The position numbers and the translations under genes are program-made. A stretch of 63,544 nucleotides of DNA, filler included, from Klebsormidium nitens (Eukaryota > Plantae > Klebsormidiophyceae): NCBI GenBank assembly GCA_000708835.1. It is 7 parts of 7 records of this genome, joined end to end, with 100 filler letters (N's around TTAATTAATTAA, not from the genome) between each part and the next. Parts side by side here need not be neighbours in the genome. Positions count along the whole stretch, not along the records: positions 18,720 to 28,096 come from DF238215.1; 6 more parts are not named here. One strand, given 5' to 3'. Shown here piece by piece: positions 18,536-28,238 of the stretch (its first letter is position 1; each line of letters starts with the position of its first letter). Below the pieces are notes generated by a model. It saw only the letters and a list, made by a program, of their open reading frames with translations. It did no database searches and was not told the origin of the DNA.

Positions 18536-18720
18536 ACGGCACGACTGCGCACCGACTTCTGGCTGCGCGCCAAACTCGCGGCCGCGCATCGTCCGTTATT
18601 ATACGCTATCGACTTATTTNNNNNNNNNNNNNNNNNNNNNNNNNNNNNNNNNNNNNNNNNNNNTTAATTAATTAANNNNNNNNNNNNNNNNNNNNNNNNN
18701 NNNNNNNNNNNNNNNNNNNC

Positions 18721-21372
18721 AGCAGCGGGCAGTGGGACGCCAGAGCGGGTGGCTCGCAACCTGCGCCACACGGATGCAGGCAACTCGCCGCAGCGCGCGT
18801 GCAGGAGGCGCACAAGTCTGACTCAGAAGGTGGGCAGTTTCAAAACCCGCAGGACAATGTTGCTAGCATCAGCCAACAGGATGTCCCCACGATTCTGAGC
18901 CAGGGAATGGACGTATCACCGCAGGCGCCCATGTTGGTTGCAATGCCTGTGGCTGAGCAGAATGACATCATCGATGTGTCAGAGCCGGAGCTTGTTAACA
19001 CAAGTGCGCAGAACAATACCGCGGTAGGGACAAGTGAAGAAGAGTCCCCATCAGGAACTGGCTCTGACTCAGAGGATTTCTCAGGGGAGCTCACTGCAAC
19101 GGATGACATTAGCGAGCCCACTGAGTCCGGGGAGCTTTATTCCCCGTCAGAAGATCAGAGTAGCAAGGAGGATTCCTCGGAGCTGGAGCCCAGTGAGTCA
19201 ATGACCCCCACGGAGTCAGAAACCACAGGGACAGACAGCTCAACCTCTTCCTACCGCTCTGCAGAAACCGACGACGAGCTCACCTCCGAGCACGTCGGCC
19301 GCACCTCTTCCAAGCTGGCCGCCTTCCGGGAGAAGACGGAAAAGCTGCGGAAGTACGATCCCACAGATCGGAAGGTGGGAACCACCCTGGACTGCCTCCA
19401 CCCCTGGAGCAAGACCCACTACATCCACGACCCCGAGCACCTCCCCAACTTCTGGAAGAAGACCGCCAGGTGGAAGAAGAGGAAGCTCGGCGCCACCCTC
19501 TGCATCGGCAACCGCCGCATCCCCAGCGAGGGCAAGGGCAAGAAGAAGTCGCGGGCGGACAGTGTGGGCAAGGTGGACAAGGTCATGATCGCCCTGGACT
19601 GCCTTCACAAGCCGATGCAGGACGAAAAGCAGGTGGACCGGGTTCTCGCCTGGATCGACAGGGCGGACGCCGCCCAGCGCGACTACGTGGAGCGGCGCAA
19701 GGCGGAGCCCCCCAAGGTCACCAAGGTCAAGAAGCCGACGGCGCAGGACGTGGCGGACGCCCTCAACAAGAACACTGAGGCGTTCAAGACGTTCGCCGCC
19801 GCTCTAGCCCTCCCCGAAGGCGCCAGCCTGCAGAAGATCATCCAGGACGGCTTGGCGGCCCAAGGAAACTCCCTGCCCGTCAACGGGGACCAGCCCACCG
19901 AAGCCCAGGACCAGGGGGCAGAGGAGGGCGCGGGTCCCCTCGACGATGACGACAACGAGCTGGACGAGCGGGATGCGGAGCACGAGGCCGCAGCCGGAAG
20001 CGCCCACGAGGACGAAGACGCGGAGGACGACGCAGCCGACTCCCCCCAGGAGGCGGCCGCAAAGTCGGACCCCGCCGCGGACAAACCCTCAGCGCAGCCG
20101 GCGGTTCAGACCTCCGCAGCCCACAGCTCCCCCCAGCGGTCCTCAACCCCCGTCCAGTCAGCACCTGCGCAGACCTCTGCACCTCTTGAGGCCCCTGCGC
20201 AGGCCGCATCTACCCCAGCTGTGCAGTCCCCGGCCCCAGCGGCCTCTGCGCAGCTCCAGAACAACCAGGCAGCGGCAGCCTCACCGCCGCCTCCGGCCCG
20301 CGCAACCTCTGCGCAGCCTGCCGCCCAGGTGCCTCTCCAGCAGCCGCCGCCACGCGCGACTGACGTGGAGGACCTGCGGTCCAGCAGCCCCGCGCGCCCC
20401 CAGGGACCTGACCATCCGGGGCAGCGCCAGCCGGACGACACCGCGACTTCCACGCCGCCCAGGCCGCGCGCCCAGGGACTTGACACCCGGGGCCTGCGCC
20501 AGCCTTCGCCTGCGGCCGCAGAGCCGCACCACGACACCACCCCTGACCCGCCGCCCACGCGCAAGAAGAACAAGCGGGACAGGAACCGGCCCCCATACGC
20601 ACCAGAGCCAACGCCCGCCGCTGAAGGAGCGGCCCAGGCGCTCCAGGCTCTGTCCGGGGACCCGTACGAGCTGGAGGAGACGCGCCCCCGCCGGCGCAAC
20701 CGCGACAGCCAGCGCCCCGACACCACGGGCGCCGAGGGATCCCTCCCCCTCAAGAAGAAGAAGAAGAAGGCGGAACCTGCCCTGGAGAAGGGTGGGACGG
20801 ATGTCCGCCAGGGCCTGAAGGAGCTGAAGGAGCTGAAGGAGTTGAAAAAGTCGAAGGTGGAGAAGAAAACCAAGCTGGCCATCATCGACCCCGAAGAGCC
20901 CACCAGCGACCGCAAGCCCAAGGCCGGGAAGAAGCGGAAGGAGGCGGCCTCGTCCACCACCGACACGGACGACCTCGCCATCTGCGCCAGCCGCAGCAAG
21001 CTCCCTCCCCGCCAGGACAACCAAAAAGTAAGTCCTGGACAAATTCGAACACTCAGAAACACAAGTGTCCTAAAAATGCCCACAGCCCACCACACAAGGA
21101 CTTTGCGTGAACAGGCCTGTGCGGCACAAACCAACCTAGAAGATCCTGTTACACCAGAACCCACTTCTTCGCTTGGACTAACCAGCACACAACAATCTGC
21201 TGTGGCCCAAATCTTAGAATTAACGGAAGGCGTGGAGTTACAATTTCATTGGACCTCCGCGCACAACCTTCCCTGCAAGTTTCTGGACATGCTAGGACAT
21301 GGGTTGAACATTCTGGTTCAGTCTCGCTGGCTGCTTGTGACGGCGGGGCTTGTTAGCACGCCGTTGGATTGA
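18721..21372 (+). CDS. Long ORF1 (gag-position, low-complexity S/E, A/P/Q and K-rich)
   Basis: Stop-free frame of ~880 codons from the gap edge; no canonical gag motif recognised; directly upstream of the protease contig. Confidence 0.65.
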   Translation, partial: SSGQWDARAGGSQPAPHGCRQLAAARVQEAHKSDSEGGQFQNPQDNVASISQQDVPTILSQGMDVSPQAPMLVAMPVAEQNDIIDVSEPELVNTSAQNNTAVGTSEEESPSGTGSDSEDFSGELTATDDISEPTESGELYSPSEDQSSKEDSSELEPSESMTPTESETTGTDSSTSSYRSAETDDELTSEHVGRTSSKLAAFREKTEKLRKYDPTDRKVGTTLDCLHPWSKTHYIHDPEHLPNFWKKTARWKKRKLGATLCIGNRRIPSEGKGKKKSRADSVGKVDKVMIALDCLHKPMQDEKQVDRVLAWIDRADAAQRDYVERRKAEPPKVTKVKKPTAQDVADALNKNTEAFKTFAAALALPEGASLQKIIQDGLAAQGNSLPVNGDQPTEAQDQGAEEGAGPLDDDDNELDERDAEHEAAAGSAHEDEDAEDDAADSPQEAAAKSDPAADKPSAQPAVQTSAAHSSPQRSSTPVQSAPAQTSAPLEAPAQAASTPAVQSPAPAASAQLQNNQAAAASPPPPARATSAQPAAQVPLQQPPPRATDVEDLRSSSPARPQGPDHPGQRQPDDTATSTPPRPRAQGLDTRGLRQPSPAAAEPHHDTTPDPPPTRKKNKRDRNRPPYAPEPTPAAEGAAQALQALSGDPYELEETRPRRRNRDSQRPDTTGAEGSLPLKKKKKKAEPALEKGGTDVRQGLKELKELKELKKSKVEKKTKLAIIDPEEPTSDRKPKAGKKRKEAASSTTDTDDLAICASRSKLPPRQDNQKVSPGQIRTLRNTSVLKMPTAHHTRTLREQACAAQTNLEDPVTPEPTSSLGLTSTQQSAVAQILELTEGVELQFHWTSAHNLPCKFLDMLGHGLNILVQSRWLLVTAGLVSTPLD

Positions 21373-21465
21373 ATACATTTACGGCTGTCAGTCTGCTTAC
21401 ACATGTGCGGAAACCATGGGCAAGCTTTACAGCCAACAGACAAGGNNNNNNNNNNNNNNNNNNNN

Positions 21466-22229
21466 CAGCGGCAGCCTCACCGCCGCCTCCGGCCCGCGCA
21501 ACCTCTGCGCAGCCTGCCGCTCAGGTGCCTCTCCAGCAGCCGCCGCCACGCGCGACTGACGTGGAGGACCTGCGGTCCAGCAGCCCCGCGCGCCCCCAGG
21601 GACCTGACCACCCGGGGCAGCGCCAGCCGGACGACACCGCGGCTTCCACGCCGCCGAGGCCGCGCACCCAGGGACTTGACACCCGGGGCCTGCGCCAGCC
21701 TTCGCCTGCGGCCGCAGAGCCGCACCACGACACCACCCCTGACCCGCCGCCCACACGCAAGAAGAACAAGCGGGACAGGAACCGGCCCCCATACGCACCA
21801 GAGCCAACGCCCGCCGCTGAAGGAGCGGCCCAGGCGCTCCAGGCTCTGTCCGGGGACCCGTACGAGCTGGAGGAGACGCGCCCCCGCCGACGCAACCGCG
21901 ACAGCCAGCGCCCCGACACCACGGGCGCCGAGGGATCCCTCCCCCTCAAGAAGAAGAAGAAGAAGGCGGAACCTGCCCTGGAGAAGGGTGGGACGGATGT
22001 CCGCCAGGGCCTGAAGGAGTTGAAGGAGCTGAAGGAGCTGAAGAAGTCGAAGGTGGAGAAGAAAACCAAGCTGGCCATCATCGACCCCGAAGAGCCCACC
22101 AGCGACCGCAAGCCCAAAGCCGGGAAGAAGTGGAAGGAGGCGGCCTCGTCCACCACCGACACGGACGACCTCGCCATCTGCGCCAGCCGCAGCAAGCTCT
22201 CTCCCCGCCAGGACAACCAAAAAGTAAGT
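21466..22229 (+). repeat. Second near-identical copy of the ORF1 GC-rich segment
   Basis: Matches ~20270-21033 with scattered substitutions; isolated contig between 20-N gaps. Confidence 0.85.
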
Positions 22230-22249
22230 NNNNNNNNNNNNNNNNNNNN

Positions 22250-22603
22250 CCTAGAATTGATTACTCAGGACCTAACCCCGCTTTCTTAATTAACGGTGTG
22301 GCCCTGGATTGGTTAACAATTGACACTGGCTGTGAGAGTGTAATTATCTCTAACTGGACAGCCAAACGGTTAGGAATAAATTCAGAGATGCGGCAGCAAA
22401 AAGCCATGAGTCTTATCACAGCAGATGCAATCACCACAGCACCTGTTGACAGGACTTGGGACACAGTTGAAATCTCGATTAACCCAGGGACTTCTGCGGC
22501 AACAACGGTCCAGGTTAAACTAACCATTGTTCCGTCACAGACCCGCGAAACTCTAATTGGGATGAGTGTAATTGGGCGGATTGGGCTTACACCCAATCCG
22601 TAG
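22250..22603 (+). CDS. Retropepsin-type aspartic protease domain
   Basis: 'WLTIDTGCESVIIS' (DTG at 22322-22330) and C-terminal 'TLIGMSVI' motif. In-frame TAG at 22601-22603; the frame continues into the DNMT ORF. Confidence 0.85.
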   Translation, partial: PRIDYSGPNPAFLINGVALDWLTIDTGCESVIISNWTAKRLGINSEMRQQKAMSLITADAITTAPVDRTWDTVEISINPGTSAATTVQVKLTIVPSQTRETLIGMSVIGRIGLTPNP

Positions 22604-22660
22604 ACCCAAACACTCACATATTACCCCAGGTGGTGGGAAGAAAACTCCACCACCACAGAG

Positions 22661-24034
22661 TTGCCCTCTATTTTCAACGTTGACCTACTCAACGCAGGCC
22701 TCAGCGCCGCCACTAGCTCTCGCTTAACTAATGTCACACTTTCCTACGCAGGACGAGTGACGGCCCCACGGGCCCCCAGACCGCCTCCAGCCTTTGTACA
22801 GCTATGTACAGGACCAGTCCCAGCGCCCCAGACAACGCGGGAGGAGCGAGCCGTAAGGCTCCAGCTAGAGTTTAGGGATCAGTTAGACACGCAGAGTGTT
22901 ATTACTAGCTTCCAGCGTAGCATTCGTAGTTTGACCGAGCCACCAGAGCCGGCCATCCTCTTAGCTCTTAGATACGGATCTCCATTGGATCCAAATTTTG
23001 TGGACATACATGAACAAACAGCTATTAACAGCATAGGCATAGTCATAATTGAACTGTGTTCTGGACTATGCGCGGCGACAGAAGCGCTCGTTCGCGCAGG
23101 TGTAAAAGTCCGCAAACTTTATGCCTGTGAGACAGATCCAATGTGCCGTTGTGTGGCCCAACAACGATTAGTTACACTCACCCAATTGTTTCCGCATCCA
23201 ATTAATGCCGACGCTATTATACACAGCCATGAGCAGCTGCCGCATGACATCGCTGAGATCATGGAGCAGCATATATCTGAGCTTGAACCGCCGGACATCG
23301 TAATTGCCGGATTTCCGTGTCAAGGATTTTCATCCGCAGCAACAAAGCCGCTTGGCCTTCGTGACACACGGACAAGCTTATTCCACACATGCGTAGAAAT
23401 AGTACGATGGATCTATCATCAACATGGGCCATGTATATGGCTGTTTGAAAATGTTGACGCTACCGACCATCGCAACACACAAGTCGCACATGAATACAAT
23501 CACATAGTGAAAGGCATATTAGGCCATGGAGTGGCCTTTGTTGCCGTTGCGGTCGGCTCATACGCTCACCGCCACAGACGCTTCTGGACCAACGGCATGC
23601 CAGCCGCATTATTAGGTCACATGGTCACACATACCTTTGAGAATTGTGTGCCCACTCAACAATCAGTCTGTGACGTAATCGAGCCTCATCACGAAGCTCA
23701 ATTGGCTGCACATGATTCAGTGCCAGGCAACTATGTGGTCAATGAAATTGGGAAACCACTACGCGCGTTCTCCACTTTCGTTACAGTTCGAGGCTCACAT
23801 GCATATCGCAATAATGGGCATAGTCTCTTAATTAACACAGAGACAGGACAACTCGAAGAACCAAACGCTAATGAACGCGAAGCTGCAATGGGTTTTATGG
23901 TTGGCACCACCAATTGTGCCACCGTCTCAGAAGCAGATCGCATGCGCATGCTAGGGGGGACCATGGACATGTGCCAAATTAAGTTCATTATGAGCTCCAT
24001 CATGGTTTTCCAACACGCCTTCTTCTTAAATTGA
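22661..24034 (+). CDS. C5 cytosine DNA methyltransferase domain (DNMT3-like), retrotransposon-encoded
   Basis: Motif I 'IELCSGL'; II 'ACETD'; IV 'IAGFPCQGFS' (PCQ 23315-23323); VI 'LFENV' (23447); VIII 'HRHRRFWTN'; IX-X 'EREAAMGF…RMRMLGGT', paralleling DNMT3 'EMERVFGF…RQRLLGRS'. Confidence 0.93.
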   Translation: MPSIFNVDLLNAGLSAATSSRLTNVTLSYAGRVTAPRAPRPPPAFVQLCTGPVPAPQTTREERAVRLQLEFRDQLDTQSVITSFQRSIRSLTEPPEPAILLALRYGSPLDPNFVDIHEQTAINSIGIVIIELCSGLCAATEALVRAGVKVRKLYACETDPMCRCVAQQRLVTLTQLFPHPINADAIIHSHEQLPHDIAEIMEQHISELEPPDIVIAGFPCQGFSSAATKPLGLRDTRTSLFHTCVEIVRWIYHQHGPCIWLFENVDATDHRNTQVAHEYNHIVKGILGHGVAFVAVAVGSYAHRHRRFWTNGMPAALLGHMVTHTFENCVPTQQSVCDVIEPHHEAQLAAHDSVPGNYVVNEIGKPLRAFSTFVTVRGSHAYRNNGHSLLINTETGQLEEPNANEREAAMGFMVGTTNCATVSEADRMRMLGGTMDMCQIKFIMSSIMVFQHAFFLN

Positions 24035-24460
24035 CGGCGTGCAGAGTCACAGTTAGTTAAATTACGCAACACTAATGTGACTCACCTAGCTAAACTCAGT
24101 CGGATTCCTACATCGCGACCAATCGCACCATTCGAATTGTACCAGCTTGCAGTTCTGAACCACCGGTCTATAATGTCTCACCCCGATTTTCGCACAAGAG
24201 TGCATAGCAAACGACCTGGATGGTATGTTCCCTATGCAAGGGGGGGGGAAGAGCCAATTCACTTTGCCAACGACCGTATGCAAATCACTTTGCCACCTGA
24301 CAACACAAATTCAGGCAAGAACAACGATTTGGATCAAACAGATTCAAGCCTAGAGAACCCTAACCACCCTCTCAGTAGACAAGAAGCCAGGCTTCAATAA
24401 AGACGTGCAGGCAAGGGCAGTGATCACCCCCCTGAAAAACGTAGAGAGCAGGCAACTCAT

Positions 24461-24901
24461 TTGAAAGTTACTCTCAAACATGCTGGGAAGGAAGGGCCTC
24501 AAACCGGTCTACTTAACCAAACTGTTAACCACACAGACTTACCAAAGCAGACTGCAGCAGCCTTAGGCTCAGAGCCTGTTAAGGCCAAAGGTTTAACTGT
24601 TGAACCTGCAAAAACAGCAGAGGAAGAATGGAGTTGGCCCCTAGGAGCAGCATTAACAGAAAACCAACGAATTCAGTTGATAGAGCTACTGGACAACTTC
24701 AAAGACATCTTTGCCTTCAACATGAAGGAAATGACCACCATACCTGGAGTTGAGTTTGAAATACCAGTCAGCGACGAAACACCCGTGTTCAAGCATCAGT
24801 ACCGCTTGGCGCACTCAGAGAAGGAAGATCTGGCGCAGCAAGTGGCAGAACGACTCAAGAATGGCCTTATCAGGTCATCCACATCGCAATGGGCCTTCCC
24901 C
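24461..24901 (+). CDS. Reverse transcriptase N-terminal region (gypsy type)
   Basis: 'LIELLDNFKDIFA…PGVEFEIPVSDETPVFKHQYRL…LKNGLIRSSTSQWAFP' is the typical pre-RT/RT start; cut by a gap. Confidence 0.9.
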
Positions 24902-24921
24902 NNNNNNNNNNNNNNNNNNNN

Positions 24922-25534
24922 ACCAAATTAAGTTCATTATGAGCTCAATCATGGTTTTCCAACACGCCTTCTTCTTAAATTGACGGCGTGCAGAGTCACA
25001 GTTAGTTAAAATACGCACCACTAATGTGACTCACCTAGCTAAACTCAGTCGGATTCCTACATTTCGGCTAATTGCACCATTCGAATTGTACCAGCTTGCA
25101 GTTCTGAACCACCGGTCTATAATGTCTCACCCCGATTTTCGCACAAGAGTGCATAGCGAACGACCTGGATGGTATGTTCCCTATGCAAGGGGGGGGGAAG
25201 AGCCAATTCACTTTGCCAACGACCGTATGCAAATCACTTTGTCACCTGACAACACAATTTCAGGCAAGAACAACGATTTGGATCAAACAGATTCAAGCCT
25301 AGAGAACCCTAACCACCCTCTCAGTAGGCAAGAAGCCAGACTTCAATTAAGACGTGCAGGCAAGGGCAGTGATCACCCACCTGAAAAACTTAGAGAGCAG
25401 GCAACTCATGAGAAAGTTACTCTCAAACATGCTGGGAAGGAAGGGCCTAAAACCGGTCTACTTAACCAAACTGTTAACCACACTGACTTACCAAAGCAGA
25501 CTGCAGCAGCCTCAGGCTCAGAGCCTGTTAATAG
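24922..25534 (+). repeat. Second copy of the DNMT end / DNMT-RT linker
   Basis: Matches ~23975-24590 with substitutions; lacks the TAA at 24398-24400 (TTA here) but keeps the TGA after FFLN. Confidence 0.9.
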
Positions 25535-25865
25535 NNNNNNNNNNNNNNNNNNNNNNNNNNNNNNNNNNNNNNNNNNNNNNNNNNNNNNNNNNNNNNNNNN
25601 NNNNNNNNNNNNNNNNNNNNNNNNNNNNNNNNNNNNNNNNNNNNNNNNNNNNNNNNNNNNNNNNNNNNNNNNNNNNNNNNNNNNNNNNNNNNNNNNNNNN
25701 NNNNNNNNNNNNNNNNNNNNNNNNNNNNNNNNNNNNNNNNNNNNNNNNNNNNNNNNNNNNNNNNNNNNNNNNNNNNNNNNNNNNNNNNNNNNNNNNNNNN
25801 NNNNNNNNNNNNNNNNNNNNNNNNNNNNNNNNNNNNNNNNNNNNNNNNNNNNNNNNNNNNNNNNA

Positions 25866-26588
25866 ATGATAGAGCACTTCTCAAAGTGGATAGAACTAGT
25901 TCCACTCATAGACAATACCTCAGAAGAGACGGCCAAGGCCTTCCTTCAAGTGTGCACCCACTTCGGGGCACCAGCAGAAGTACTCACGGACCAGGGGCAG
26001 GAATTTCAAGGCGAATTTGACACACTGTGCAAGGAACTCCTTATCGATCACCGCGAAACTTCGAGGGATCACCCACAAGCTGACGGCCTTGCAGAACGTA
26101 CTGTTCAAACTACAAAGCAAGCCGTGCGCAAATACGTGCTCACGCACGCAGTAGACACCTGGGATACATGGGTACCCTGGATTGCTATGGGCTACCGCAT
26201 GTCCAAGCAATTTGCATTAGGAAACTACTCACCCTACTTCCTAATGTTTGGACGACACCCAGTGGTAGGAGCTAACCTCCGAGACCTAATCAACACACCT
26301 GTTGACTTAGATGACCCTAAATTGTGGGCAGAAGTCATCGCCCACCGCGCCGAGGAGTTCCGTAAGGCCATACCCATTGCCTTCAGCAACCTCCAAGCCG
26401 CGCAACACCGAGACACCTTGTGGTACGCCAAAACCCGCACCGGGAAGTGGAGCCCAAAGGTAAAGCGCTTTGAAGTAGGCGATTTAGTCTACCTGCGCCG
26501 CAGAAAAGTTGACACCCTCGACGTTGATGTAGGCCGAATCATATTGCGAATCACTGAGGTCTTGCCCAGTGGAGCTCTTAGGCTATAG
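25866..26588 (+). CDS. Integrase core plus SH3-like C-terminus
   Basis: 'EHFSKWIELVPL…FGAPAEVLTDQGQEF…HPQADGLAERTVQTTK…SPYFLMFGRHP…FEVGDLVYLR'. TAG at 26586-26588 is in frame with the PHD ORF. Confidence 0.92.
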   Translation: MIEHFSKWIELVPLIDNTSEETAKAFLQVCTHFGAPAEVLTDQGQEFQGEFDTLCKELLIDHRETSRDHPQADGLAERTVQTTKQAVRKYVLTHAVDTWDTWVPWIAMGYRMSKQFALGNYSPYFLMFGRHPVVGANLRDLINTPVDLDDPKLWAEVIAHRAEEFRKAIPIAFSNLQAAQHRDTLWYAKTRTGKWSPKVKRFEVGDLVYLRRRKVDTLDVDVGRIILRITEVLPSGALRL

Positions 26589-26663
26589 GGAAGAGATGGC
26601 AGAACCATCAAGGATCACGTTGAGAATTGTGCCCCGTGCCATAATCCAACCATTGACCTAACA

Positions 26664-26846
26664 ATGGACACGACACTTTCGGGATATGACGAAGATTGGG
26701 CCTGTCAGATCTGCAAGAAAATAAACAGACCAGCTAAAATGCTCATCTGCAACTACTGCAGTGAGGGCTATCACATGGATTGCTTAGAACCACCAATTCT
26801 GAGGATTCCAAAAGGAGATTGGTTTTGTCCGCGTTGTGCATTGTAA
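26664..26846 (+). CDS. PHD finger at the Pol C-terminus
   Basis: C4HC3: CQIC…MLICNYCSEGYHMDCLEPP…IPKGDWFCPRC; in frame with integrase across one TAG. Confidence 0.93.
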   Translation: MDTTLSGYDEDWACQICKKINRPAKMLICNYCSEGYHMDCLEPPILRIPKGDWFCPRCAL

Positions 26847-26901
26847 ATCCTAGTAAGGGGGGCACTATTAACAAAGTTATACTTGTACCTATGCAGGAAG
26901 C

Positions 26902-27489
26902 ATGGCGTCCAGCTCTGCACCTCCAGACAGAACAGACCCACAACCGGCTCAGTCAGCCTCCGGGTGGGGACCACCTCCCGCACCCATTTCATTTCACGAA
27001 CTTATACCCATTGATAACCCACCAATACCGCCAGTATACCCCGAAAATGTATATTACGACAATACCAGGACCATGACTCTTTTTGAGTGGGAGCAGGGAT
27101 TCTGGCCCAATAAAAAGGCTCAACTCGCCTGGCGCGTTCAGCAGTGGGATGACCAAGTAAAAACCTTGGTGCGCACCAATTATCAATGGTTCGCCTTAAT
27201 CAATAGAATGTACAGGGAAATCGAAACAATCGAAAGACATAACGAGATGTTCCGTACCCCTATAACTATACGCCAATTTTTACTATTTCAGTGTCCACGG
27301 GCCGACTTGCTTCAGACTCTCCGCGATTGCGCAGAGCATTACCCAAAGAACGTAGTTATTACCAGACGCACAGGCACACCGCCGAGGAATGCCATGCTTG
27401 AGTTCATTGAGAAGCAAGTCAGTGCAGGCGAAAACGATTGTACCGCACCGTGTTCCAAGCAACATGTAGACAAATACGGCAATATTTAG
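26902..27489 (+). CDS. Orphan 195-aa ORF 3' of pol
   Basis: Uninterrupted ORF; ATG in AGCATGG context, 5 nt after a TATGCAG acceptor; Pro-rich N-terminus; no TM or signal peptide seen. Confidence 0.6.
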   Translation: MASSSAPPDRTDPQPAQSASGWGPPPAPISFHELIPIDNPPIPPVYPENVYYDNTRTMTLFEWEQGFWPNKKAQLAWRVQQWDDQVKTLVRTNYQWFALINRMYREIETIERHNEMFRTPITIRQFLLFQCPRADLLQTLRDCAEHYPKNVVITRRTGTPPRNAMLEFIEKQVSAGENDCTAPCSKQHVDKYGNI

Positions 27490-28238
27490 CAATAGTTTGG
27501 TAACAGTGGTGCTAAAACTACTCCAACGCCCCCGCTCCGCGACCCCGGATCAGAGCTGATGCCATACATGTATGGTGGCTGAGGAATAGCCCAAGCACTC
27601 ACTGCCACACACAGATAATAATAACAAACATTGCCGTTACCTCTTGCTTAACATAGGTTTCAATCATTGATAGAATTACGCAAGTTACCAGCATTGTTCC
27701 CATCAGTATGACACAAGCCCAAACCTCGTCGGGACGACTCGGTGGCTTAGGGGGGAAATAATGCATGACTATGAATTCCATACATAACCATACAACGTAC
27801 TCATGTAGTTTCATCGCTTGTCAATCAACACGAGCGCTCCGAAGTACCGAGCCTAATCAGATGCCGAGCCTATATCGCATGACAACTGTCCTGCAATAAT
27901 CCATCGGTGCCATATCGGCTCGGGTAATCGCTAAGCGAGCGACGCGTGTCACAATCGTGTAGTTTTAGGTTACGTAAATAACGATGTAGGTTAGCGCACC
28001 TAACTTAACCGTAAAACACATCGGATAGGATCATAAACCAACGGACCGTATTGGATAACCAGCGACCAACCATGGCCACTAGAATTCCATTATTGGNNNN
28101 NNNNNNNNNNNNNNNNNNNNNNNNNNNNNNNNNNNNNNNNTTAATTAATTAANNNNNNNNNNNNNNNNNNNNNNNNNNNNNNNNNNNNNNNNNNNNATTC
28201 TCAACACATCCCCCAACCTTCATCAACCTAGCACGTTC

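Follow-up and report, generated by a model that had tools for sequence, protein, structure and literature searches.

The 63,544-nucleotide (nt) stretch of Klebsormidium nitens DNA considered here (the window) is joined from seven parts of assembly GCA_000708835.1. We analysed the piece at positions 18720–28096 (DF238215.1), a gappy scaffold with runs of N at 21446–65, 22230–49, 24902–21 and 25535–864. It carries one decayed copy of a Ty3/gypsy-type long terminal repeat (LTR) retrotransposon of the streptophyte Gypsy-DNMT3 (KnitGypsy-Dnmt3) family. In this family Gag (with a zf-CCHC domain), an aspartyl protease (PR) and a DNA methyltransferase (DNMT) are followed by one in-frame UGA, after which come a linker, reverse transcriptase (RT), RNase H (RH), integrase (IN) and a PHD finger. 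The UGA is conserved among relatives, and comparison of their sequences suggests that in active family members it is probably a site of programmed readthrough.

All features of the window copy lie on the plus strand. The aspartyl protease, with its D-T-G-C-E motif, occupies 22250–22600 in the frame of the DNMT; its translation aligns with the PR of two relatives, P0001 and P0002, and Pfam gag-asp_proteas/Asp_protease_2 is matched on relatives P0002 and P0039. A Dnmt3-type C5 cytosine methyltransferase follows at 22604–24031 (Pfam PF00145, DNA_methylase, E=5.7e-12). This DNMT is intronless, is flanked by PR and RT/IN, has the PCQ and ENV catalytic motifs (as GFPCQGFS and ENVDATDH) and ends in ..FQHAFFLN. 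The candidate readthrough codon, singled out by its family-wide conservation, is the in-frame UGA directly after it (24032–24034). A 9-nt spacer (24035–24043) opens with CGG (24035–24037), which makes the type II readthrough context (PMC3159437), and leads into a hairpin recovered by folding at 24044–24083, with a stem of 8 + 5 base pairs (bp), a 1-nt bulge in the 5′ arm and a 13-nt loop. The 5′ arm is GAGTCACA-G-TTAGT (24044–24057) and the 3′ arm ACTAA-TGTGACTC (24071–24083), 13 bp in all. The stop, the CGG and both arms had been placed at these positions by the initial annotation, and all the coordinates were correct on recheck. Translation also bears out its statement that the DNMT open reading frame (ORF), the linker and the RT N-terminus share one frame through the TGA. 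The linker and RT N-terminus extend in this zero frame over 24035–24901, as seen by translation and tblastn; the RT motif region ..FAFNMKEMTTIPG..SSTSQWAFP (~24608–24901) is 46% identical to ORF2 of the related locus L089 (tblastn).

Further downstream are the integrase core (25866–26585, Pfam rve) and the PHD finger (26589–26843, Pfam PHD; terminal TAA at 26844–46). Together, 25866–26843 is 61% identical at the amino acid level to L089 ORF2, where IN and PHD lie in one ORF. The order visible in the window is thus PR, RT N-terminus, IN and PHD, with the RT core and RNase H falling in the 330-N gap at 25535–25864; the full order PR-RT-RNase H-IN is seen in relatives L003 and L089. Three private in-frame stops mark the window copy as dead, since relatives have sense codons at each: a TAG at 22601–22603 in the PR–DNMT spacer (sense in P0001 and P0002), which breaks the PR-DNMT ORF in this copy only, a TAA at 24398–24400 in the linker, and a TAG at 26586–26588 between IN and PHD.

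The stop after the DNMT behaves differently. A protein search with the window DNMT returned 38 close homologues, and 1132 at E≤1e-3; homologues at 41–84% identity share its terminal residue. At the nucleotide level, 18 distinct junctions could be read from 15 family loci plus the window; their sources are metagenomes of soil and other origin, Logan assemblies and the K. nitens genome. TGA stands at the homologous codon in 17 of the 18, across lineages whose DNMTs are 35–84% identical, with K. nitens (locus L085) among them. The pattern that the initial annotation had proposed to look for, a fixed TGA among other stops that are private, is therefore what the relatives display. The base at +4 is C in all 18 junctions though the residue that it helps to encode varies (R, Q, P). 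The stop is followed by CGG in 13 junctions, by CAA-CUA or CAA-UUA in 3, by CAG-UUC in 1 and by CCG in 1. Stops at the end of ORF2 vary (TAA, TAG, TAA). Immediately 5′ of the UGA there is a pyrimidine in every junction (T in 15, C in 3), and the last residue before the stop may be N, D, S, L, V or F. The junctions with CAA or CAG (L087:11126, L094:1394, L093:4742, L003:1428) belong to clade b, which includes K. nitens-like copies and reads UGA-CAA-CUA, UGA-CAA-UUA or UGA-CAG-UUC. Because this clade has the CAR-YYA of tobacco mosaic virus (TMV) type after its UGA, together with a hairpin, two classical leaky contexts alternate within one family. The closest relative, L001 (84%), ends 6 nt past the stop, and its hairpin region lies beyond the contig. 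A scan of metagenomes with the DNMT alignment retrieved mostly bacterial and phage DNMTs, among which only L005–L007 belong to the family.

Protein collections show the same end point. An exhaustive search without profiles, run over 1.84 billion representatives of 50%-identity clusters, gave seven proteins that match at 45% identity or more and extend to the C-terminus, and all seven stop at the site. The last DNMT motif is present in 42 family proteins; 34 of these terminate exactly 15 residues past it, at the stop, and only two continue beyond: a copy with CGA at the site and the K. nitens gene model P0040. The upstream product is seen whole in another K. nitens protein, P0039 (GAQ93235.1, 1160 aa), with zf-CCHC at 297–313, PR at 598–691 and DNMT at 833–1158; it ends at residue 1160, at the stop, in agreement with the Gag-PR-DNMT product that had been proposed. 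The ORF maps of L093, L087 and L001 had hinted at a –1 frameshift from Gag to PR. For L093 and L087 this was rejected, as the frame changes within sequence that is continuous in relatives (P0024) and the changes are private indels; in L001 such a shift is possible. Since P0039 is a single ORF and the frame changes of L093 and L087 are private, the ancestral ORF1 was Gag-PR-DNMT.

Age and decay do not explain the conserved stop. Synonymous divergence in the family is near saturation (the closest pair of readable copies already has a pS of 0.66), so a neutral stop would have drifted among TGA, TAA and TAG. The initial annotation had itself raised the possibility that the TGA is a CpG-decay mutation shared by descent. 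About 100 CGA codons are intact in the flanking ORFs, at 2–13 per copy, and the sole CGA variant at the site comes from a decayed copy, L090. In locus L003, where 420 + 914 codons are open, 11 CGA codons are intact and there is no other stop, the TGA is nevertheless present. The intact CGA codons elsewhere in the ORFs rule out CpG decay of an ancestral CGA.

The sequence past the stop is constrained as coding sequence in the same frame. RT is in the zero frame in every readable copy (L003, L089, L094, L005, L007, L093, L087, L004a and window copy 2), and purifying selection acts in that frame on the first 53–180 codons past the stop. The ratio of nonsynonymous to synonymous divergence (dN/dS) is 0.16 between the window and L086, over the first 53 codons, and 0.24–0.66 for other pairs. 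No restart codon is conserved, as the first in-frame AUG falls at positions that range from codon 3 to codon 150, and several lineages have conserved linker motifs upstream of this AUG.

A helix of at least 6 bp starts 6–10 nt past the UGA in 10 of 10 junctions; among 2420 in-frame positions that served as controls in these loci the figure is 14% (binomial 3e-9, or ~8e-6 on a count of only 6 independent lineages). Post-stop sequences cannot be aligned between clades, yet each has its positioned helix. GC content is locally high in the 75 nt downstream of the stop, which by folding fall among the best 1–6% of local segments in 7 of 10 junctions. Covariation of the stem, which the initial annotation had also proposed to look for, appears as compensatory changes in two clades, a and c, both of them small samples. 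In clade a, with three readable junctions, comparison of the window with L086 shows an invariant 8-bp core, one compensatory change from U-A to C-G and one pair that becomes a U·G wobble; the bulged base is changed and the loop-closing tip pair is lost. In this clade the paired sites vary less than the 159 nt around them (Fisher p=0.02, or p=0.008 when restricted to sites capable of synonymous change). In clade c, 87.5% of cells are paired as against 32–57% in slid controls, a level equalled in 2 of 500 shuffles, and three pairs are doubly changed. With 3 and 6 sequences in the two clades, the phylogenetic support for the stem is moderate. Folding covered nested structures. In a further lineage, L004:599–680 (..KAFQTEILTV, then TGA CGG), a very strong G/C hairpin begins 7 nt past the stop (–41 kcal/mol for the 75 nt).

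For the window itself, the 64 nt from the stop fold into the hairpin described above, with a minimum free energy of –17.8 kcal/mol and a z-score of –2.7 relative to shuffles, and the second assembled copy folds likewise. A repeat search overlooked this hairpin because of its bulge. The hairpin by itself is mildly unusual but not convincing, and the window signal exceeds chance only through comparison with relatives. The second copy, which the initial annotation had used as support, is a gap-flanking duplicate at 24922–25534 that is ~96% identical to 23973–24580. It does keep the stop (TGA 24981–83), the CGG and the matching hairpin (24993–25032) with two changes confined to the loop, and it does lack the TAA at 24398. 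As support this is worthless: two changes in 52 nt are the background rate of such a duplicate, so its stem conservation is uninformative, and we rejected the copy as independent evidence.

Taken together, the +4 C, the contexts, the zero-frame RT, the positioned helix, the compensatory changes and the constraint after the stop fit the type of readthrough described for viral signals (PMC3159437). In the mechanism that we propose, most ribosomes would terminate at the UGA and yield abundant Gag-PR-DNMT, and a minority would decode it with a near-cognate tRNA. The C in the 3′ context (UGA-CGG, or UGA-CAR-YYA in one clade) would aid this decoding, and the stem-loop 6–10 nt downstream, which would sit at the mRNA entrance of the ribosome, would also promote readthrough. 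Ribosomes that read through would stay in the zero frame and produce a Gag-PR-DNMT-RT-RH-IN-PHD polyprotein.

Several observations weigh against this reading. In the decayed copy L090, whose RT is frameshifted, the site reads CGA (CGA CGG), and the K. nitens gene model P0040 (GAQ80425.1) joins the last DNMT motif to the post-stop linker and omits the stop; this model probably contains an intron invented to avoid an in-frame stop, or represents a deletion copy. The base 5′ of the stop is a pyrimidine and not the A favoured in many viral sites (PMC3159437). The energy of the window hairpin is unexceptional: the folding of the 75 nt that follow the stop is equalled by 27% of 75-nt segments in the window element, and short inverted repeats of a similar kind abound in the neighbourhood. 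Locus by locus, the z-scores against shuffles are modest (between –0.4 and –2.3, and +0.2 in one case), and the covariation samples are small (3 and 6 sequences), some lineages sharing ancestry. The gag-UGA-pol junction of Tca2, which has a predicted pseudoknot, gave no readthrough in a yeast reporter (PMC2194720).

Tca2, in which a minor promoter is present (PMC2194720), is also a precedent for true termination with independent production of RT–IN, whether from an internal promoter or subgenomic RNA, by entry of the internal ribosome entry site (IRES) type, or by termination and reinitiation; the hairpin would then serve pausing or packaging. We regard this as unlikely. Independent initiation need not keep the zero frame, which is nevertheless kept in every readable lineage. 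No AUG downstream of the stop is conserved, and the codons directly past the stop are under purifying selection. Termination alone could be served by any stop, yet selection has kept UGA and the +4 C. Nor is reinitiation expected in eukaryotes once an ORF of more than 1000 codons has been translated. A different origin for the TGA would be shared or recurrent CpG decay (CGA to TGA), or some other inactivation, of active elements with a continuous Gag-PR-DNMT-RT ORF. Such an ORF is implied by the published map, which puts the DNMT within the Pol polyprotein, and the elements carry methylation in K. nitens (PMC5890265); the CGA CGG of L090, the evident decay of the window copy and the absence of a stop after the DNMT in distant DNMT-bearing elements point the same way. 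This explanation is largely refuted here and very improbable, given a TGA in 17 of 18 junctions despite saturated synonymous divergence and its presence between the long intact ORFs of L003. The adjacent CpG of the CGG is retained, L090 is itself frameshifted, and decay leaves the positioned helix and the +4 C unexplained.

Two further alternatives concern how the stop is passed. Some green algae have selenoproteins, and a hairpin just 3′ of the UGA resembles the bacterial selenocysteine insertion sequence (SECIS) or eukaryotic selenocysteine-redefinition elements, so the codon might be decoded by dedicated means, as selenocysteine or in a host code that uses UGA as a sense codon. No SECIS was matched in Rfam at E≤1 in 18720–28096, a piece outside which the full 3′ end of the element may lie. 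Intact ORFs contain no other in-frame TGA, which speaks against a general sense codon; the stems differ in sequence between clades and have no common loop motif, and the contexts match readthrough hexamers (PMC3159437), all of which makes dedicated decoding very unlikely. Removal of the stop from some transcripts by splicing would resemble the Ogre elements, in which an intron lies at the same domain boundary, GAG-PROT / RT-RH-INT (PMC6317226), and P0040, which lacks the stop between the DNMT end and the linker, could be taken as such a product. An intron would have no space, however, since the proteins are conserved as far as the stop (..FQxAFFxx) and again from the codon that follows; splicing is not needed to keep the frame, and P0040 looks like the predictor's way round an in-frame stop, or a deletion. 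We consider splicing hardly plausible, and readthrough the explanation to set beside known recoding systems.

Readthrough context classes follow Beier & Grimm. UGA-CGG is the type II context and CAR-YYA the TMV-type hexamer of type I (PMC3159437), as the initial annotation had held for UGA followed by CGG or CUA with a stem-loop. Type II contexts with an extended 3′ stem-loop are found at the alphavirus nsP3/nsP4 junction, in the replicases of tobra-, peclu-, furo- and pomoviruses and in coltivirus VP9 (Firth et al. 2011, PMC3159437). The junction described here shares with these experimentally studied signals the UGA-CGG, a stem of at least 10 bp, the 1-nt bulge often found in the 5′ arm, a spacer of 7–9 nt and a zero-frame polymerase (PMC3159437), as well as compensatory changes and conservation at synonymous sites. 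It differs in its carrier, a nuclear LTR retrotransposon of streptophyte algae in which the signal is a predicted one, in its compact hairpins with 13–35-nt loops where the viral extended stems have 100-nt loops, and in its 5′ pyrimidine in place of A and the one clade with TMV-type CAR-YYA after the UGA.

Among retroelements, Skipper of Dictyostelium reportedly expresses Gag-Pol through an in-frame stop (Leng et al. 1998). The fission-yeast Ty3/gypsy elements Tj1, Tosmo and Tcry have GAA-TGA-CTR at the Gag/Pol boundary (PMC10085805). The algal family resembles these elements, Tca2 and murine leukemia virus (MuLV; UAG with a pseudoknot, which in gammaretroviruses is compact and lies 8 nt downstream) in that a single conserved in-frame stop, usually UGA, parts structural from replicative proteins, whose ratio it would set, with the local context and 3′ structure conserved. 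The difference is that the stop lies past PR and the accessory DNMT, not at the Gag/PR boundary upstream of PR; given this position, PR and DNMT would both be made at the level of Gag. Plant LTR elements with split ORFs (GAG-PROT / RT-RH-INT), among them Ogre with its partially spliced intron of ~270 bp (Neumann et al. 2019, PMC6317226), likewise have the break between PR and RT, so that PR is made with Gag. In contrast to Ogre, the break here is a single stop codon with no spacer and a preserved frame, and those plant elements have no DNMT.

The published account of KnitGypsy-Dnmt3 (de Mendoza et al. 2018, PMC5890265) sets the DNMT "into the Pol polyprotein ORF" and speaks of neither a stop nor recoding. 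In comparison with that map, the DNMT found here is the C-terminal domain of the Gag-PR ORF, and a conserved UGA precedes RT. The terminal repeats of the family are reported as DIRS-like. Among the papers searched, "KnitGypsy" occurs in no other, and a 2026 preprint on methyltransferase-bearing retrotransposons mentions no such stop. The initial annotation had offered the arrangement as undescribed. This holds for its combination with a DNMT, whereas a break between PR and RT (PMC6317226) and readthrough of a stop in Ty3/gypsy elements (PMC10085805) were already known.

Membership of the window element in the family is seen in three K. nitens proteins that share its domain order and C-terminal tail, P0039 and P0040 (both 49% identical to the window DNMT) and P0036 (35%). 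The clade of the window element is divergent, with DNMT identities of 84% to a sequence from an uncultured Logan assembly, 75% to one from a soil metagenome and at most 49% to K. nitens proteins. More than 100 distant DNMT relatives (25–35% identity; for example P0053, P0065 and P0046) are long single polyproteins of the order RT-RNaseH-DNMT-IN-PHD, one with an added Tudor domain. P0053, P0065 and P0046 resemble the window element in having a Dnmt3-like domain in a Ty3/gypsy polyprotein with a C-terminal PHD finger; unlike it, they have the DNMT internal to Pol and no stop after it. The difference in order means that the DNMT occupies two positions in PHD-bearing Gypsy-like elements. In the window element, as in L089 and P0053, the last domain is a PHD finger, in the place that a chromodomain takes in chromoviruses.

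What is new here is modest but concrete, a conserved readthrough module of type II or type I-like context that is placed after PR and an acquired DNMT. We further suggest, more tentatively, that with its recoding site after the acquired DNMT the family may make this enzyme at the level of Gag, fused to Gag-PR and probably packaged, and far above RT and IN, and that the site may have been long maintained through both UGA-CGG and UGA-CAR-YYA, each with its own hairpin. Particles could then contain as much DNMT as Gag, and the enzyme would be in large excess over RT and IN. If so, the dosage of the DNMT, beyond its mere presence, would be a selected trait of the element, and mutants with a tight stop or a sense codon at the site would give a direct handle on the purpose of a transposon DNMT. 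This bears on why retrotransposons carry DNMTs at all, for example to methylate their own cDNA or to act on host chromatin. The published streptophyte Gypsy-DNMT3 map is corrected, the DNMT being the C-terminal domain of the Gag-PR product and not an internal Pol domain. The family would also add a cellular, non-viral example from the plant lineage to the known modules of UGA-C with a 3′ stem-loop, one in which type I-like and type II-like contexts interchange. Gene predictors mis-model these loci, as one K. nitens model omits the stop and others end there.

Upstream of PR, a Gag-like region at 18751–21372 is rich in Pro, Ala and Glu, GC-rich and of low complexity. It was identified by tblastn with the L001 ORFs upstream of PR-DNMT as queries, with 37–42% amino acid identity across 18751–19674 and 20314–21366; no Pfam domain was matched within it. 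The N gaps at 21446–65 and 22230–49 intervene between this region and PR, so the Gag frame relative to PR cannot be established from this copy. A tandem repeat is present in duplicate, at 20815 and 22011. Duplicates also follow the 20-N gaps, 21466–22229 repeating ~20270–21040 and 24922–25534 repeating 23973–24580, at ~65–96% identity. The scaffold thus joins overlapping copies or haplotypes of a repeat, which makes frames across the N gaps meaningless. The only Rfam match, to sRNA71 at 22562–22662, is at chance level and was discarded. In the linker, a run of nine G (..ARGGEEP..) is present in both assembled copies, at 24241–24249 and 25190–25198, and may be prone to slippage. Finally, on a 50-kb metagenome contig, a TIR/TPR gene resembling plant disease-resistance genes (L002:483–4460) adjoins one family copy, a neighbour that fits a streptophyte host for these "metagenome" contigs.

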